From: Asterias rubens | Taxonomy: Eukaryota | DNA length: 64,000 nucleotides | NCBI RefSeq assembly: GCF_902459465.1 | Contig: NC_047079.1 | Span: forward strand, 5,580,001 to 5,644,000 | Direction: 5' to 3' | Shown: positions 3,001 through 36,250 of the stretch, piece by piece | How the letters are laid out: every line of letters begins with the position of its first letter | How positions within the stretch are numbered: position 1 is the stretch's first letter | The notes under the pieces: model-generated | The model's input: the letters and a program-made list of their open reading frames with translations, nothing else | Databases searched by the model: none | What the model was told of the DNA's origin: nothing | Program-made: the position numbers and the translations under genes

Positions 3001-6000
3001 ATGGAATGGAAGGAGTTGAAGTAACTGTGAGGAGTCGAGCATGGGGCGTGAGACGAGAGTAGACTTAACCCGAGTCCCTCCTCCGACACTGAGCCATTGA
3101 GAGGATGGCCAGACTTTCGAACGGATGGAAGGGTGGTCGAACGAAGCCGCTGACCACAAAGTCTTCACAGACTCTCAGCCAGCTACCTTCTTTTATTAGT
3201 TTTACTTACCCCTAGGCCCTTTTGGTACAAAGGAAAGATAAAAAAAACTGTGTAAACATGGGAACTTATCAAATTGACCTGTACATGCGCATTCTCTGGT
3301 GGGGAAAAAAAACAAATGCCACAAAGCAAAGTCTAAACTGAAACGTTTCATGCAGTTTTGGCCCCACTCAATTGACCGTTTGGTCAAGTCTATTTTCAAA
3401 CCTTCATGGCATTGCAACAAATGAACAAATGTTTTGAACGAATGATTGCAAATAAGAAGCAGAGCAGAATTTCATCACAAGATGGCAATATTTCGGCACA
3501 AATTATGAACAAATCGTTAACTCAGTGTCACCCATCGTCCTCCCTTGCTCCCATGATAGCATAATCCCTCTTTACCCCATCCCCCCCCCACATGTCTTCA
3601 GGATGAGACTGAAACACACTGCTTAATCTTCTGCCATTCCAGTTCGATTTGCAGCATGCTTAAAGCAGGCATTGTCAAGCAAGTGATATCAATTAGATCC
3701 TGTGCATGGTGTTTGGTGCTGGCATATTCAGGTACAAACAAATACTCGTCACCTCAGTACAGATAATCGCCCAACTTTAAAATTGCTTAAGAAGGACATC
3801 TGGATTGTTTTTGTTTTCCCCCCAAATAAATGCAGATACAAACTCTCTCGGAAGTTGTGCAACATTCACAGATGAGCTTTAACTAGCAATAGAACAAAAA
3901 GGGGTTTGCAATGTGCAAACTTTTTTCTTAATCAATAAATAAGTGTGTGCTTTTCCATTAAATGTGCATCACAACTGACAACTTAATTAAAAATAATTAT
4001 TTAATAACTTATTTGTTATTTGACTTTTGAAGAAAAAAGAGTTGACGAGTGAGGTTCTAGAAAGTATCTGCTCCAAGCCTGAAACACCGGCCAACAAACA
4101 CCATATCGAGGAGCTAGGGTGAACCACCCAGGCCGAGGGTAACTTACCAGGCAGTCTGCACAAGTTGTGCATTGCGTTCACACTCCAGGACTTGAAGGTA
4201 GGTCACTACCATCTGCAATCGCACCATTAGTGCGAAAGAGACAAGACCAAAAAATAGGTGTGTTAGCTCAATTTACTGATCTCGTTAACAGGTTTAATAA
4301 CAAATAATAAAATCTGTGAAACAACAAAATGCGCATTTTAAGGCTGCTGTTGGCTTTTCTGTGAAGAACTCCTGAATGTAGGGCAAAGGTGAGGTGTACA
4401 TCGATATCGGATTTGTAAGTTGGATTTAGAGTAATGTCTGGGACCAGGACATGATTTGTTACATGTGAATCTTTGAGGGGGCAAGGCCATTTTCCATACT
4501 GCACTTCCATTGAACTCAATTGAAATCTTTAAGTTTTAGGGTACATTTTGATGAAACACAAAAGGCCAAGACATAGCCCATTGCCTCCATGTAATTCACC
4601 CCTGGTTTAAACAGTAAGCGCACTATTTTTCACCAACCCATACAAGAAAAAGTGTAAATATTGAGTTGTTTGTGGCTGGCAAAATATATTAAACATAAAC
4701 AAAATCCAGCACTCGTTGATCAACTTGTCGCAAGAATCTGAAAAACAACTTCCTGAAAAAGCAAAATCTATATGCAGTACAAGTCAGACTACTTTGAATG
4801 TTATTAAAATATACAACGTCTCGAAAGGAAAGGTACCAACCTTGTGTGGGTGCTTGACGTGGACACAGAAGCCCAGCTCCTTGAGAACCCTCCGTTCAGC
4901 TTTGATGACCTGATTCTTCATGTTGAGGTACTTCTGGTCTAGTACCATCGGATCTACAGGTCTGCAGTAGGGAAGATACAAGGATTTGTCTACTACTGGC
5001 TTGATCGTAGTCACCTCAACACTAGGATTTGATGATGTGGCATTTGGTTCACTCAAACAGCTCGTTCTTGTGTGCAATATTGTTTTTTAAAGCTTTTGTT
5101 ATTTTACTATGGCAACTGAAAAGTGGTTCATGGAACATTAAAACTGCTATCTTTCTTTCCTGATTCATTTTTTGTCCATGTCTCACCATTGATTGGACCT
5201 TGTTAAGTTTTTAGCATAACCCACAAATTATCTTCAAGTACCAATTGTAGAAATAATAGATGTTAAATTTGCAACGGGGATAAAGAATATAATATAATTG
5301 TAGAAATGGTTAAATAACAAACCCTGGGATGATATTTTGAGATGTTATTTTCATGATTACTTGGTGCTACATGTATCTAGAGAGATTGGTTTAAGTTCGC
5401 AAAGAAGTTGATATAAGCATGGGGATTCAGACAGATTGAGAATGCAACCTTAAGGCCATGTCACACGAGGCAATTTATAGGCAACCAGTTCCAGGCAATC
5501 TCAACGAAGAAAATCTATTCACATTTCAGCGTTCTCGTTATTTTCTTGGGGATAGTGAGTTTCAGTTAGAACAATGTCTCTTCTGCTTTTTTCAGCATAC
5601 AGTGCAGTTGGTTGCCTCTAACTTGCCTAGAAAATTGCCCCGCGAGGCAAAACCTTTTACAGTAGCCACCCTGCGAGTAATGCTGCGTGTAACAATAGCG
5701 TCAGGGGGAATCGAGTCAGGGTCAGGTGGAAAGAGACTTGCTGAAGGCGACCTGCCGAAGCTAGGACCCTTGCCCAAACCGACAACACTGAAGCCCCAAA
5801 TACCAAGCAACTCTTTTGGGGAATATCACTGGCAAGCAAGGGAGTGGCGTCAGAGTGTCCAGTCTCAGAGTCCGGCCCACCAGCCAGGCCATGGGTTAAT
5901 GACCGGAGAGAGAGATGGCATGTCTCAAGTGTGGCTGGCTGACCATTCGCTGTGGGAAACAACCACAGTGAAGGGAAGAAACGAGTGTTATTTACCCATT

Positions 6001-20707: not shown

Positions 20708-28086
<7,379 letters not shown>

Positions 28087-29954: not shown

Positions 29955-31064
29955 TTAAAACAGAAGTTGTTCACACTATACTTGGATAAAACCAACATCT
30001 TCTTGACTAAATTTCTCAGACTGAATTTCTCAAAATTCATTTTAACAGTTCAGGCCTGTAACTTCATCGAGTTTATTTAAAAATTATCACAATACATGTA
30101 CATTCATACAAATTTATCAAATATATATATTCTTTTCATTTAAATTACCCAAGTACATAATATTTTTTCCATACAAATTATAACAGTGGTAAAATTGGAT
30201 AGAGCTTTGGTCTATAAAATATTTCAGAAAATGATAAAAAAATCAAATTAAAAAAGTCACAAAATTAATTTTCACAATAAAATACCACATACCTGCTTTG
30301 AGTTGTACTCATATTTGGCCATCAATTGTTGCCCATGATGGACAAATTCCAATTTGTGGATTCGGGTCCTATTCATGGCACCTGTGTCCCTGATCGAGAC
30401 ACTTCTAGTCATAAGTGCCCGGCCCTTTGGATGGGACGTAAAGCCTTGGGTCCTGTGTGTCATGACATTAGGAGAGAAAGCTTGCCCTGTGTTACTGGCA
30501 GTAATATGCAACACCTCACCTTGTGCCCCTGGTAATTGTCTTCTTGCTACACCTCATAAAATTATTAATAATCATCTCTAAAAGCACACTATCCCAAATT
30601 AAATCAGCTTTCAAATAAAAAAATAACTAACTCAGAGATCCAAGCCCATGAAGAAGCAAATATTGCTTATTTTAAGAAGCAGAAAACAATTTAAACAAAT
30701 TCTGATCATGAGAAAATCGAAAAGCAAACAACAGGGTATTCTGGGCACAATTTCACAAAGCTTTTAATGGGTAATTTGTGCTTGCATTGGTAGGAAAATA
30801 GCATTACTTAATCCAGGGCCTAATTTCATACAACCAGTCAGTAAAAAACTTGCTAACCACAGACAAATCTTGCTTAACAGAAACTGGTTACCAACCAAAA
30901 ATCCATACATTTTACAATGTTGCAACTGGTTCTCCACTCATTTTTCACTACCAAAGAAATTTGCATCGCAATATTTTCTGCTTAGCAGCGCTATGAAATC
31001 TGTCCCTGGCTGGCACTGTTTTCCCATTTACCAAATTGTTTTCTGCTTAGCTGGCTTTAGCAGC

Positions 31065-33343
31065 TTATGGTCTTTCCCCGGAAGCCATTTTCCGATTGAT
31101 GTCGTCAATGACAGGAGGCAGGTCTTTCACGCTATCAATGACGTAGTGACACCCGCATTCCGCTAAAATGTTGTAGGCGTTCTTCAGACGGCGTGCGTAC
31201 TCGACAGTGTCCATGTCCGCCATTTGCTTCTCACTGGCAGCCATATAGTTACCCTGGAAACAAAAACAAAAAACATATTGTGTGTTCTTGTTGCACCGAT
31301 TCACATGGGCCCAATTTCAAGCTTAACAGTAAGCAAATTTTTGTGCTTAAAAAGTAGCACAATAATGTGCTTAACGGTAAGCTTTTTCACAGGTAAGACA
31401 GAAAAAAAGGCGGTCAGCTTGGATGCTCACCATGGATAGTTACATTTTTAGTCAATCATTTTCATACAGTAAGCACTGGAAGGTAAGCATGCCTTTTCGT
31501 GTGCTTGCAATTAGCAGTGCTATGAAAAGGAAACTCACGCAGTAAATCACAAAAACAGATCATTAAGAGGCTCTATGGGCCCAATTTAATAAAGCTGCAT
31601 AAAACAGAAAATATTGCTAAAGATTTATGCTTACTGCAGGCTTAATCAAATTGGGCCCAGTTTTGTGTCATCGATAGCTTTAAGTGAGATAACTTGATAC
31701 CAGTGAGTTTGAAATTGACTTACAGTTTTTGCCACTCCGACTGTCCAACATCCAGCAGCCAGTCCTTCCCTGATTCCATCAACGGTATCGTCAACCTTTA
31801 TATTCAATGACAGGTTTACAAATCATTAACCACTACTCAAAAAGACCTTTGCAATCTAAGGGTTCTGGCTTAGTGCTAGAAGTCTCTTATTTGCAAATTC
31901 ATATATTGTAACAATAGAAAAGGTGTTAAATGTAAAATAGCTATAAACTAACCAATTTTAATAATCAAAACATCACATAAATGTTTTCCTAACAAAATTC
32001 GTATGCATCTTTGCCAAACAAATACTCCCCCGTGAGCTGAGAAAGATTAAAGGAATGTTATTGGCCCAATGACCAGGGGTCGATTTCACAAAGAGTTGGG
32101 ACTAGTCCTAACTTAGGACTAGTCCTAGGAGATATACAAGTTGCATGGATAGTCCTAACTGGTCCTAACTCGAGATAAGACTATTTTTTAAGGCTATTTT
32201 TTATTCCACCAACCTTTATGATGGCTTCAATGGGGTGCACGTCAAGCTTGATGGCATTCAACCACACCATGTGAGGGCAGGGTCTGGCCTGGGGTACAAG
32301 ATCTGCGGTCACGATGACGTCTGGGATGAAACCCTGACTTGCTGCGATCTCCTTCAGGTCGGCCATGATGGGGGAGGTGAACCCGGTACAGGAACCGATC
32401 TTCAAACCGCAGTGAAGTCGAAGATGATTCACTACTGTCACAACCCCTGGAAAAAAAAAATAATAATAATAATATTTAAAACAGATTTACTTGACAAGTC
32501 TTACAAGTTCTACAATCCAGTTTTTTTTGGGTCAAAACACTTACAAAATCTCTTAAACCTTATGTGAGGAATTACAGAGATGTGTGAAGTATTACTTTAC
32601 TAGGATATCAAGAATTTCTGTTGATGGGAAGAAGGGAAAAGGTAAATACAATGCATGTAAACAGACAACCTTCTATCATGTCGCCATGGTTCTTCAGAAC
32701 CTGTCGCTGGAGTGGAACAAATTTCTTGTACATGGACTCAATGTCATCCTCTGTGGGTGGCTTTCCGTCGTGTGCTTCCATCCAACGTTTGCGGACAGAC
32801 GAGAGCTCCAGCACTTTCTGAATATGAACCTGTGAAAATGAAAATTCACAAAAGAACCGTTGACTTTTTCGTTCATTCGCTCCAACATCTTGTGTGTTTA
32901 ACTTACTGTTTATTGTATCATAACTCTGTGGCCTCACTAGACCTGATCGCCTACTTCACGGAGATGATTGCCTCCATGGCCCCCTGGCCCTTGAATTGCT
33001 CCAGTAGAAATTTACAATTTCCTCATAGGTTGCCCTTTACCAAGAAGAAAATGCCTTGATGCCCTTGCCCATTCAAAAACGAAGCATACGATAACAGGCC
33101 TGCCTCACTGAATTTTGACCAGTCCCAATCTACACGTAAAGCTGCAGGCCTTGAACTTTGCTCTTGTCGGGGCACGGCAGTTTTCCACGGTTAAGGGGCA
33201 CTCTATGATAAAAATGTGCAATGTTTTACTGTGTACATTTGTTAATCTTTTATCTTAAGTGCACTTCTGTAGATTGTTATTAGCTGGGATCCATGGGAGA
33301 ACAGTGAGTTTTTCTTACTAAATGGATTTCCCATGATAAACAA

Positions 33344-33374
<31 letters not shown>

Positions 33375-34809
33375 AATGTACATTTCTATTGGACTTTTGC
33401 AATGGGCACCAGTGCAAAAAGCACCATCGCAATTGCTGTGGGTATCTTGGGTTAAAAGCTGCAGCTAAAAAAGAAATCGCCCCAGGGCTAACAAATTTCT
33501 TGCAGGGTGCTGTATAGCCCTCTAGTCAGGACTGACAGGAAGAGGAGATCCTCCGAGGATCTCCTAAATAACATTCCTAATGGATTTATTTCTTGACGGT
33601 GGGTAACCTACTTTCTTATGAGTCCCCATCGGTCCCCTTGCCTCCTCATCCGTGATGGCCACTCCTTCACCCTTGAAGATTTCAACAAAGGTGTAGGCCG
33701 GAGCGAAGACTCCACAGTCAACGACCGTTCCCGCCCAGTCAAAGATAACTGCTTTTACTTTGCCCACATATCTCCTGGTGTGGTGATAAGGCATTAGTGG
33801 GTTGCTCCATGGAGCTGAATTTAAGAAATAAACAATAAAAAAAATAGTAATAATAATTATGACAAGATTTTTATTCATTAGCATTAGCATTTGACATAGA
33901 CTTCACAATTTAAGTTCTAACCCCCCCCCCCAATTTTTTTTTTAAAGAAATAAAGGTTCAACAAATAAGTCAAAACATTTTTTTTTTTCCCTGGCTGTCG
34001 CCCCCCCCCCCCCCCCCCCCCCACCCCTGTCACAAGTTGTTTTTTCTCTAACAATTTTGATTTAATAAGGGCATTATCAATCATAAAATAACACAGTTTG
34101 TTTAAAGTAAGAAGTATTACTTTTAGTTTTAGCGAATGTAACAATTAAAGATAAAAATAAATTAAGTACAAATAAATTTATTATTAATATAAGGTTAATT
34201 AAGTATAAATAATATTTATTACATCATGTACATACACCCAGATGTGGGGCAACAGATCTACGGATCGTAGTATGTATTTGCTTTTGTTGTCCCTTGCCCA
34301 TCTTGGGGTATAATGTTGTCAATGTAATTTGTTTTGTACTGTTATGGCGAATAAAATAATAATAATAATAATAACACCCACTTTAAGATTCATAATCATA
34401 TACATTTGGCTTTTGAAATTGGTGGTTCGGTTGACTTGGCAAAATTACATGCGGTCTAAATTAACTTGCCTACAGTTTTTAGAAGAATTGCCAACATTCA
34501 ATTCAATAAATATAAATACTACTACTGAAACTTGAAAGTTTCAGTGAATATTACTACACTCCTATTCCTTCTTTAAAACAAATCTAAGCAATCAAGCGGT
34601 CAATTTAAAAAAAGAAACAATATAACATTCATTTTTACATTTTAAACAATTGTCTAACCATGACACTGACAGCAGTGACACCGACACTGACAATGACATT
34701 CAGTGAACATGTTCAAGTTAATAATTTTTTTAACGTACCCTTTCAATTTCATTTCATTTGTCATAAAGTAAAACCAACCGAATCTAACCCTAAGCTTACC
34801 TGATGCCAT
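31065..34809 (-). CDS. phnX: Phosphonoacetaldehyde hydrolase (phosphonatase, HAD superfamily); exons 34809-34800 (10 nt, least certain), 33814-33612, 32829-32670, 32446-32214, 31795-31724, 31253-31065 (288 aa)
   Basis: HAD motif I in the PhnX form [13 protein letters not shown], cap-domain PMGTHKKVH (Schiff-base Lys and His), motif II IGSCTGF, motif III QARPCP, motif [14 protein letters not shown], and [13 protein letters not shown]. Five GT-AG introns, total 867 nt in frame. Confidence 0.93.
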
Positions 34810-36250
34810 ATTAAATTGCTATTATTAATAATTATGTCGCAAAATGGTGTAACAATAGCTCACACTATCTTCCCAAAACGCTCAAGTAAAAGCAATAATT
34901 GTTCTCGAACATCAAGCACAAGTGAGTGCGTTCAACTTCTCAAAATGTTGCACCCGCCCACCCACATGCTAAAAACAAAGTTCTTTGCATTGGCTGTTTA
35001 TGTTTTTGTTCTCCTAACCCAAAGTAGGACACCCGAATCGAAAATAACGTTGCATAAACAATCATAGGAAAAAAATAAGTAATTAACAGGCAATGTTTAC
35101 CAATGGGCACTACTTCCTCCAACGGATAAATTCATGCTACTAAATTAAAATAAAATTAAATGAAATATGATTTATGTTAACCTAAAGAACAGTCTAATAT
35201 TTATTTTATTTGTTTAAACAAAATGTTTAATTTGATGTTGAGAGATTGTTTGGACCCCGATATCTATTTTTAGATCGAGTTAAATGAGGTCAATTGGGGT
35301 CAAATGAATGAGAGCGTCGGCCATCTTGCTTTTGAAATTGACAATTTACGTGCTTTTTGTGCATCGGTAACAAAACAAGGCATTTATCTCTACTTCAAAC
35401 TTATTTCAGTTCTGAGTGAATGGTCCATATTGGAGAGGAATGCTTACATTATTTCATGAGCCAGGTAATGTATTTGGAGTAATTTTAACTGTTGCAAAAG
35501 CATTTTTGTTCTCGTGAATTTGGATGTTGTGATTGATGTTTTCAATTTCGTGTGTTGTGCAGCGTCTGTACGAACGTCATGTACATGCGAATCCGTACAT
35601 GTACATGGCGCATGATGTTGATCACCAGATAGCACGGAAGTTTAGCTTAGACCGTATATCTGGGTATGTACATCATACATGTACAGTGTACAACCAACAC
35701 AAGTACAATGTTGATGTACGTACTTATTTGATGGTTGATAAACTACATGGGCAGTACCCGTGACATAGCATCGCGAAGACCGCCTAGGCGCCTGACTGAA
35801 TCACTGATTTATCCACATGATGTCATTTCAGTTGGGCGCCCTCACCTATCTAGAGGTCAAAAGGTGGTTGTTCATTGGCCAATTATATTGTGCGCCTCGC
35901 GTCAAATCTGTGCATCTCGATTGTTTCGTCACCGTTTTTCCTGTAAATAAGAATCTTATTAAGTAAGCTAAGATGGTTATTTATAACGTCTATCGTCAAA
36001 CGATAGAGCAACTGAGGAAAGGCATTGAGTAATTTTGACTTGTTAATTAATTGTTGTGGGAAGGGGCATCGAAGGGGCAGTCGAAGCCCCCTGTGTTCCT
36101 TCCCACAATGCTTTTCGACAGTTGAGAAAAATAAGCCAGGTTTCAATGTGAAGACTTGCATGTGAAAGATTACCGTATCCTGCCAAAAAGTGCCACCACA
36201 TTTTCAGAATTACAACATCTACAAGTGAAAAAGTGGTGACAGGGTATGTA
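34810..36250. promoter_or_regulatory. Divergent promoter region phnX / CNOT2, with a probable non-coding CNOT2 exon ending near 36244
   Basis: Head-to-head orientation, a CpG-richer block at 35530-36130, and a donor-like CAGG|GTATGT near 36244 upstream of the ATG-bearing exon whose acceptor is at 37218. Confidence 0.5.

Follow-up and report, generated by a model that had tools for sequence, protein, structure and literature searches.

In a 64,000-nucleotide stretch of the Asterias rubens genome (contig NC_047079.1, positions 5,580,001 to 5,644,000; hereafter, the window), we investigated a six-exon gene on the minus strand (34809-31065) whose product belongs to the phosphonoacetaldehyde hydrolase family. 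This gene is, with good probability, the Asterias rubens orthologue of phosphonoacetaldehyde hydrolase (PhnX, EC 3.11.1.1), a nuclear, six-exon, expressed phnX belonging to a clade that has been inherited vertically since the animal ancestor. The assignment is based on gene structure, expression, family membership, fold, catalytic residues, phylogeny and shared introns, all of which were observed.

Much of the organic phosphorus in the sea is present as phosphonates, which also abound in the membranes of invertebrates, yet their breakdown is treated as microbial. Eukaryotic phosphonate metabolism was described as "even more cryptic" in a 2023 review (PMC10574752). The family itself is known and animal phnX is already in the literature, with previous reports for corals, rotifers and a snail, so the novelty attributed to the gene in the original prediction (an annotation made from the DNA sequence alone) was overrated. 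Our analysis adds a pre-metazoan, vertically inherited gene and a distinct eukaryotic active-site signature.

Structure and expression of the phnX gene

The gene lies where it had been predicted, with six exons, GT-AG boundaries at every intron of the gene model, and spliced RNA; its coding sequence of 867 nt encodes a 288-amino-acid protein. All coordinates below refer to the window, and all phnX features are on the minus strand. Exon 1 (34800-34985; gene model and RNA contig) comprises the 5' untranslated region (UTR; approximately 34985-34810) and, in the gene model, the first 10 coding bases (34809-34800), coding just Met-Ala-Ser plus one base, with the ATG start codon at 34809-34807 and the GT donor of intron 1 at 34799. 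Exon 2 (33814-33612; gene model, RNA, and positions 1-48 of the family profile TIGR01422) encodes the N-terminal segment, motif I DWAGT with the nucleophile Asp29 (codons at 33726-33740), and M66-G67-T-H-K70, the codon of the Schiff-base Lys70 being located at 33615-33617. Exon 3 (32829-32670; gene model, RNA, TIGR01422 51-100) supplies the remaining cap domain from V72-H73, with the codon of H73, the His56 equivalent, at 32824-32826; the motif M66-G-x-x-K70-x-x-H73 is therefore interrupted by intron 2. Exon 4 (32446-32214; gene model, RNA, TIGR01422 104-178) carries motif II T145-G146-F147 (TG codons at 32382-32387), R179-P180 (32280-32285) and K202, and exon 5 (31795-31724; gene model, RNA, TIGR01422 179-201) carries motif IV V203-D204-D205-T206 in its DD form (31784-31795). 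The 62 C-terminal codons and the stop (31253-31065) are followed in exon 6 (31253-30865) by a 3' UTR extending to approximately 30865.

The start codon is fixed by three in-frame stops (TAA, TAA, TAG) immediately 5' of the ATG. A longer N-terminus in Asterias PhnX was ruled out by these stops together with the same first exon in the RNA contig. Within the 5' UTR, upstream ATGs at 34912 and 34967 start short upstream open reading frames that are out of frame with the main one.

Expression was found in Asterias rubens and in a sister species. Assembled RNA contigs from two Asterias rubens runs were free of mismatches on the phnX exons and skipped the introns (pieces 30865-31252, 32210-32445, 32669-32829, 33610-33814 and 34800-34985), with joints at 31252/31723 and 31791/32210. 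The contig from run X2 connected 34800-34985 with exon 2, and the piece 30865-31252 from run X1 was mismatch-free over exon 6 and the 3' UTR. The sister-species run contained an identically spliced form that differed at scattered positions; among 16 listed coding differences, a partial selection, 12 were synonymous and 4 nonsynonymous, and this synonymous excess points to purifying selection on phnX. These results confirm that phnX is a genuine sea star gene that is transcribed and spliced. It occurs as a single copy in the window (tblastn).

The 288-residue protein was identical at all 288 positions to the NCBI entry "phosphonoacetaldehyde hydrolase-like [Asterias rubens]" (record LR699109.1, assembly GCA_902459465.3). 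Similar genes had been said to be annotated in other invertebrates, which they are, and the Asterias rubens gene itself is annotated too, already with the phosphonatase reading; the gene is thus not new: PhnX forms a pan-animal family, already named by automatic annotation, and the sea star protein is a typical member of it.

Family membership, fold and active site

The whole protein scored 298.3 bits against the NCBIfam equivalog TIGR01422 (cut-off 220), residues 23-275 covering the profile from end to end (1-251 of 251), and the second-best family, the PhnX-like TIGR03351, reached 69.8 bits. Each of the five exon pieces from exons 2-6 matched TIGR01422 on its own, collinearly across profile positions 1-251. 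The whole protein also matched Pfam PF00702 and PF13419; the separate exon pieces, which are too short, matched no Pfam family. Homologues were collected with exon 4 as the query and then with the closest full-length protein (Glandiceps), and this search recovered the Asterias protein.

The closest solved relatives were the Oleispira structure 3IRU (E-value 9e-60) and the Bacillus cereus PhnX structures (E-value ~1e-59). An AlphaFold model built from a 30-sequence alignment (mean predicted local distance difference test, pLDDT, of 93) predicted the HAD fold of solved PhnX, a Rossmann-like core into which a helical cap is inserted. Foldseek superposed the model on 3IRU with a TMt of 0.96, and on 1RQL, 1SWV and 1FEZ with TMt values of 0.94-0.95 and root-mean-square deviations (rmsd) of 1.4-1.6 Å; over all superposed PhnX structures the rmsd spanned 1.4-2.3 Å, and HAD enzymes other than PhnX reached a TMq of 0.66 at most.

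The five motifs named in the original prediction are present: DWAGT (D29-T33), M66-G-x-x-K70-x-x-H73, T145-G146, R179-P180 and K202-V-D-D-T206. The cap motif M-G-x-x-K-x-x-H sets PhnX apart from HAD phosphatases, and Arg160 of PhnX stands where HAD enzymes usually have their motif III Lys. In comparison with B. cereus PhnX (1FEZ, 1RQL, 2IOF), the Asterias protein is 42% identical over the whole enzyme, has the same HAD core and helical cap (TMt 0.94, rmsd 1.6 Å), and keeps twelve active-site equivalents: Asp12 (D29 in Asterias), Ala14 (A31), Thr16 (T33), Met49 (M66), Gly50 (G67), Lys53 (K70), His56 (H73), Thr126 (T145), Gly127 (G146), Arg160 (R179), Asp186 (D205) and Thr187 (T206). The equivalents of D12, K53, H56, T126, G127, R160 and D186 were near-invariant across 269 sequences, and M66, G67, K70 and H73 were invariant in the 30-sequence alignment. 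Roles described for PhnX include the Mg2+ ligands, the Schiff-base Lys, the nucleophilic Asp, and the Arg and Thr that bind the phosphonate (PMC7916636).

Unlike B. cereus PhnX, the Asterias protein has Val39 for Cys22, Cys37 for Tyr20, His69 for Leu52, Phe147 for Tyr128 and Ala178 for Gly159, as well as an N-terminus longer by approximately 20 residues, which include a conserved WSNP..Y..RRY segment, and its gene is nuclear, intron-bearing and without an operon partner. The claim of a complete catalytic motif set, made for the gene at the outset, thus applies to the residues directly involved in catalysis and not to the replaced Cys22 and Tyr128.

Motif IV differs as well, reading DDxxxG in Asterias (K202-V-D204-D205-T206-V-D-G209) and GDxxxD in B. 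cereus. This DD..G form was also present in 62 of the 139 sequences outside the eukaryote-type clade defined below, and it is shared with the Gram-negative DD-type phosphonatases, including Oleispira antarctica 3IRU and the Achromobacter PhnX enzymes, which were purified and active (PMC11203657). The best PDB match in both structure and sequence, 3IRU, aligned to the extreme C-terminus including ...R-L-A-x-G-E-x-P. In contrast to Asterias, with Val and Phe, these DD-type phosphonatases have Ser at position 22 and Tyr at position 128.

Reaction, substrate source and specificity

Activity, substrate source and physiological role we infer, and the mechanism proposed here is that of the bacterial enzyme, by homology. 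In it, phosphonoacetaldehyde would bind between cap and core, where the cap-domain Lys70 would form a Schiff base with its aldehyde. Asp29 of the HAD core, which together with Asp205 would bind Mg2+, would then attack the phosphorus, and the carbon-phosphorus (C-P) bond would break; Arg179 and Thr145 would hold the phosphonate, His73 would assist proton transfer, and water would finally free acetaldehyde and phosphate. Because every residue for these steps is present, the Asterias protein is probably an active phosphonatase.

Its role is likely the mineralisation of phosphonoacetaldehyde derived from 2-aminoethylphosphonate, which would come from phosphonolipid-rich prey such as mussels or from the animal's own phosphonate turnover. 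Asterias rubens feeds on mussels. Since mussels are rich in ceramide aminoethylphosphonate (CAEP; PMC8708635), a dietary role of Asterias PhnX is plausible. In a snail haemocyte proteome, PhnX-like and PhnW-like proteins were both detected (PMC6281880).

Several results weigh against the protein being a phosphonatase of this kind. Cys22 of B. cereus, replaced here by Val, holds a water of the Mg2+ sphere (PMC7916636), and substitutions of B. cereus Cys22, Gly185 and Asp190 reduced activity (PMC11203657); Tyr128, which is Phe in Asterias, helps activate water for Schiff-base hydrolysis. The literature searched contained no assay of any eukaryote-type PhnX. As regards the substrate, no phnW, pepM or other phosphonoacetaldehyde source has been shown for Asterias, the whole genome not having been searched, and we found no evidence for phosphonates in sea stars.

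The absence of phnW from the window, already part of the original prediction, was borne out by tblastn. With a bacterial PhnW as query, taken from the closest bacterial locus (L002), at which phnW adjoins phnX, all of the 120 matches listed were bacterial or metagenomic, and the protein cluster atlas listed only bacterial clusters for PhnW. A missing PhnW would nevertheless not refute PhnX function, since phosphonoacetaldehyde can also be provided by PbfA-type lyases, by flavin adenine dinucleotide (FAD)-dependent PbfB/C/D oxidoreductases, and by the biosynthetic decarboxylase (PMC10574752). Among the bacterial homologues, three long proteins were PhnW-PhnX fusions in either order. We also observed a metagenomic bacterial protein of 659 amino acids in which an FAD-dependent oxidoreductase of the DAO family (6-370) is fused to PhnX (402-599); it fits the reported PbfB/C/D-type phosphonoacetaldehyde producers without PhnW.

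The alternative that fares best accepts the enzyme and alters its purpose: a real PhnX with a housekeeping role, clearing reactive phosphonoacetaldehyde from the animal's own phosphoenolpyruvate mutase/phosphonopyruvate decarboxylase pathway and not from its diet. Aminoethylphosphonate is both made and degraded via phosphonoacetaldehyde as an intermediate (PMC8942020; PMC10574752), and cnidarians, which have CAEP-rich membranes (PMC8708635), possess the family; however, neither pepM nor ppd was shown for Asterias, for which the whole genome was not searched, and no evidence was found for phosphonate synthesis by sea stars. We therefore consider this role unlikely, although it is compatible with the phosphonatase assignment.

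The second alternative retains the fold and the chemistry and assumes a shifted specificity, towards another phosphono-aldehyde or -ketone or mainly towards phosphatase activity, brought about by a remodelled second shell. It draws on a signature that runs through a whole clade. In a 269-row FastTree, a eukaryote-type clade of 130 rows contained no bacterium (support 96), and we counted residues in this clade and in the other 139 sequences, numbered as in B. cereus. The motif I Asp was present in 127 of the 130. Position 22 was Val in 125 of the 130, whereas the others had Ser (84), Cys (40) or Val (4). Position 20 was Cys in 107 of the clade's sequences, as opposed to Phe, Tyr or His, and position 52, which adjoins the Schiff-base Lys, was His in 116, as opposed to a mixture in which Ala was most frequent (40). 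At position 159, Ala (116 of 130) faced Gly (128 of 139), and position 128 was divided between Phe (84) and Tyr (45) inside the clade, with Tyr (129) prevailing over Phe (9) outside it. That the cap domain of HAD enzymes determines specificity is established knowledge, and speaks for a shift. Against it, the Schiff-base Lys and His56, absent from ordinary HAD phosphatases, are near-invariant, the TIGR01422 score is far over its cut-off, and some bacterial sequences likewise have Phe at 128 or Val at 22. Because positions 22 and 128 vary among bacteria too, Val39 and Phe147 would represent a subfamily difference and no bar to membership. We thus read Val22, Cys20, His52 and Ala159, together with Phe or Tyr128, as a putative subfamily signature compatible with PhnX membership, and regard a shifted specificity as less probable still than the housekeeping role.

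Origin of animal phnX and its genomic setting

Among the matches listed, the closest full-length relatives of Asterias PhnX were all animals, at 56-84% identity. They belonged to sea stars, a brittle star, a crinoid, a sea cucumber, sea urchins, acorn worms and amphioxus, and further to anemones, corals, jellyfish, Hydra, sponges, horseshoe crabs, myriapods, crustaceans and mites. These proteins (from Patiria, Amphiura, Saccoglossus, Branchiostoma, Nematostella, Acropora, Hydra, sponges, horseshoe crabs and crustaceans, for instance) are annotated as "phosphonoacetaldehyde hydrolase-like" and have the signature, the clade and the introns in common with Asterias. The 120 matches listed included no sequence of a mollusc, annelid, insect, nematode, tunicate or vertebrate, which is no proof of absence. 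Vertebrates may lack the pathway, as the original prediction had it. A few protists fell into the same identity range (one foraminifer and one centrohelid, by their EukProt labels), and the best bacterial match had 47% identity.

We inferred a maximum-likelihood tree of 102 rows, comprising 41 named animals, 4 protists, 17 unnamed sequences and 40 bacteria. Its root was not inferred, every second bacterial locus was omitted from it, and this tree and the FastTree alike exclude proteins below 230 or above 460 amino acids as well as locus L013, whose match contains a stop. The eukaryote-type clade of this tree comprised 57 rows and no bacterium (support 100/90). All 41 named animals formed one group with three unnamed environmental sequences (87/88), outside of which the protist lineages were placed. 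Within the animals, support was 100/99 for Bilateria, 100/97 for hemichordates, and 96/91 for the echinoderm classes except the crinoid. The neighbour of the whole eukaryote-type clade was a small bacterial group including Candidatus Microthrix, and in the 269-row FastTree the clade was nested in successive bacterial and unnamed groups. In Candidatus Microthrix sp. UBA7884, PhnX (4019-4858) had no phnW within 4 kb, and its neighbours were a membrane pyrophosphatase, an SDR oxidoreductase and an M23 peptidase.

Intron positions were mapped by exact protein-to-genome matching in Asterias, Branchiostoma, Eriocheir, Dysidea, Nematostella and Hydra. The intron before the last exon (K-T / G-N-Y, phase 0) was common to all six representatives, that is, to the sea star, amphioxus, crab, sponge and both cnidarians. 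Two more, one after H-K-K/R (phase 0) and one in the Gly codon after M-I-x (phase 1), were shared by Asterias, amphioxus, the crab and the sponge, giving sea star and sponge three identical positions. An N-terminal intron of phase 1 fell in one and the same codon in Nematostella, Hydra, Dysidea and Eriocheir; in Asterias and Branchiostoma it was displaced by no more than one codon, and a phase 0 intron at I-I-K / V-D-D was found only in these two deuterostomes. Chance would not be expected to give introns of exactly the same position and phase in the genes of a sponge, cnidarians and bilaterians. The shared positions and phases, together with the single animal group in the tree, indicate that phnX predates the animal radiation: on sequence grounds, an intron-bearing phnX can be placed in the last common ancestor of animals, with vertical inheritance thereafter, and the bacterial-looking enzyme entered eukaryotes before that ancestor. 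The choice between ancient retention and early transfer, for which a phylogeny had been suggested, is therefore largely settled in favour of a gene that already had introns before sponges, cnidarians and bilaterians split.

Published work attributes coral phnX to horizontal acquisition (PMC4878875; preprint 10.64898/2026.05.06.723128), and the same has been stated for bdelloid rotifers (PMC3499245). The shared introns and the tree, which contains no labelled Symbiodiniaceae sequences, are in tension with the claims of a coral-specific acquisition. That the Asterias gene itself arose by assembly contamination or by recent horizontal transfer into echinoderms, an idea related to the proposed coral acquisition via Symbiodiniaceae and favoured by these reports and by PhnX being mostly a bacterial enzyme, is scarcely credible in view of its five spliceosomal introns, CNOT2-like and PSMC2-like flanking genes and spliced mRNA, the grouping of animals roughly according to the species tree in a clade without bacteria, and the introns common to sponge through chordate, the last one extending to Nematostella and Hydra. 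Contamination, already rejected in the original prediction because the gene lies between core animal genes, is ruled out, as are a pseudogene and recent transfer.

The length of the N-terminus varied among homologues. Cnidarian, sponge, Limulus and protist proteins have an Arg/Ser-rich N-terminal extension derived from exon 1, which Asterias lacks, and 49-76 residues precede the DW of motif I in them, compared with 28 in Asterias. The short form was found in Asterias, Patiria, Amphiura, sea urchins and the crab, and the long form also in the crinoid and the sea cucumber. The extension looks like a mitochondrial presequence, and its distribution suggests repeated loss of mitochondrial targeting. 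For a first biochemical test of an animal phosphonatase, a sea star that eats mussels and has the short enzyme, free of a presequence, would be convenient to work from.

Taken as a whole, the family may be an ancient eukaryote-type phosphonatase with a single pre-animal bacterial entry, at first mitochondrial, vertically inherited since, and with a remodelled active-site shell (Val for Cys22, Cys for Tyr20, His for Leu52, Ala for Gly159); we propose this combined account tentatively, as one slightly less likely than not to be right in full. If it is true, marine invertebrates, and not just their microbes, cleave C-P bonds themselves, and the accounts of horizontal transfer of coral phnX would be artefacts of sparse sampling.

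The flanking genes are both on the plus strand. The PSMC2-like proteasome AAA ATPase gene (21065-28086; called gene with OB_PRS7, AAA and AAA_lid_3) is arranged tail to tail with phnX, and its AAA exons were recovered independently at 26077-27032. The CNOT2-like gene (36367 to beyond 44809; called gene with NOT2_3_5_C) is arranged head to head, approximately 1.4 kb from phnX.

Repeats were observed in and around the phnX introns. Segments of introns 4 and 2 (31929-32290 and 32834-33195) reached a summed contig depth of up to ~4e5 in all four runs, with many loose ends and internal joints; they are interspersed repeats resembling a short interspersed nuclear element (SINE) or a miniature inverted-repeat transposable element (MITE). 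Further high-depth copies lay at 30843-31023, in the 3' UTR of exon 6, and at 31386-31566, in intron 5; back-joints from 31504 to 30982 in several runs identify these two as copies of one repeat family. In intron 1, 33920-34034 contains long homopolymer C and T runs, of which 33990-34034 was masked as a repeat in the read analysis.

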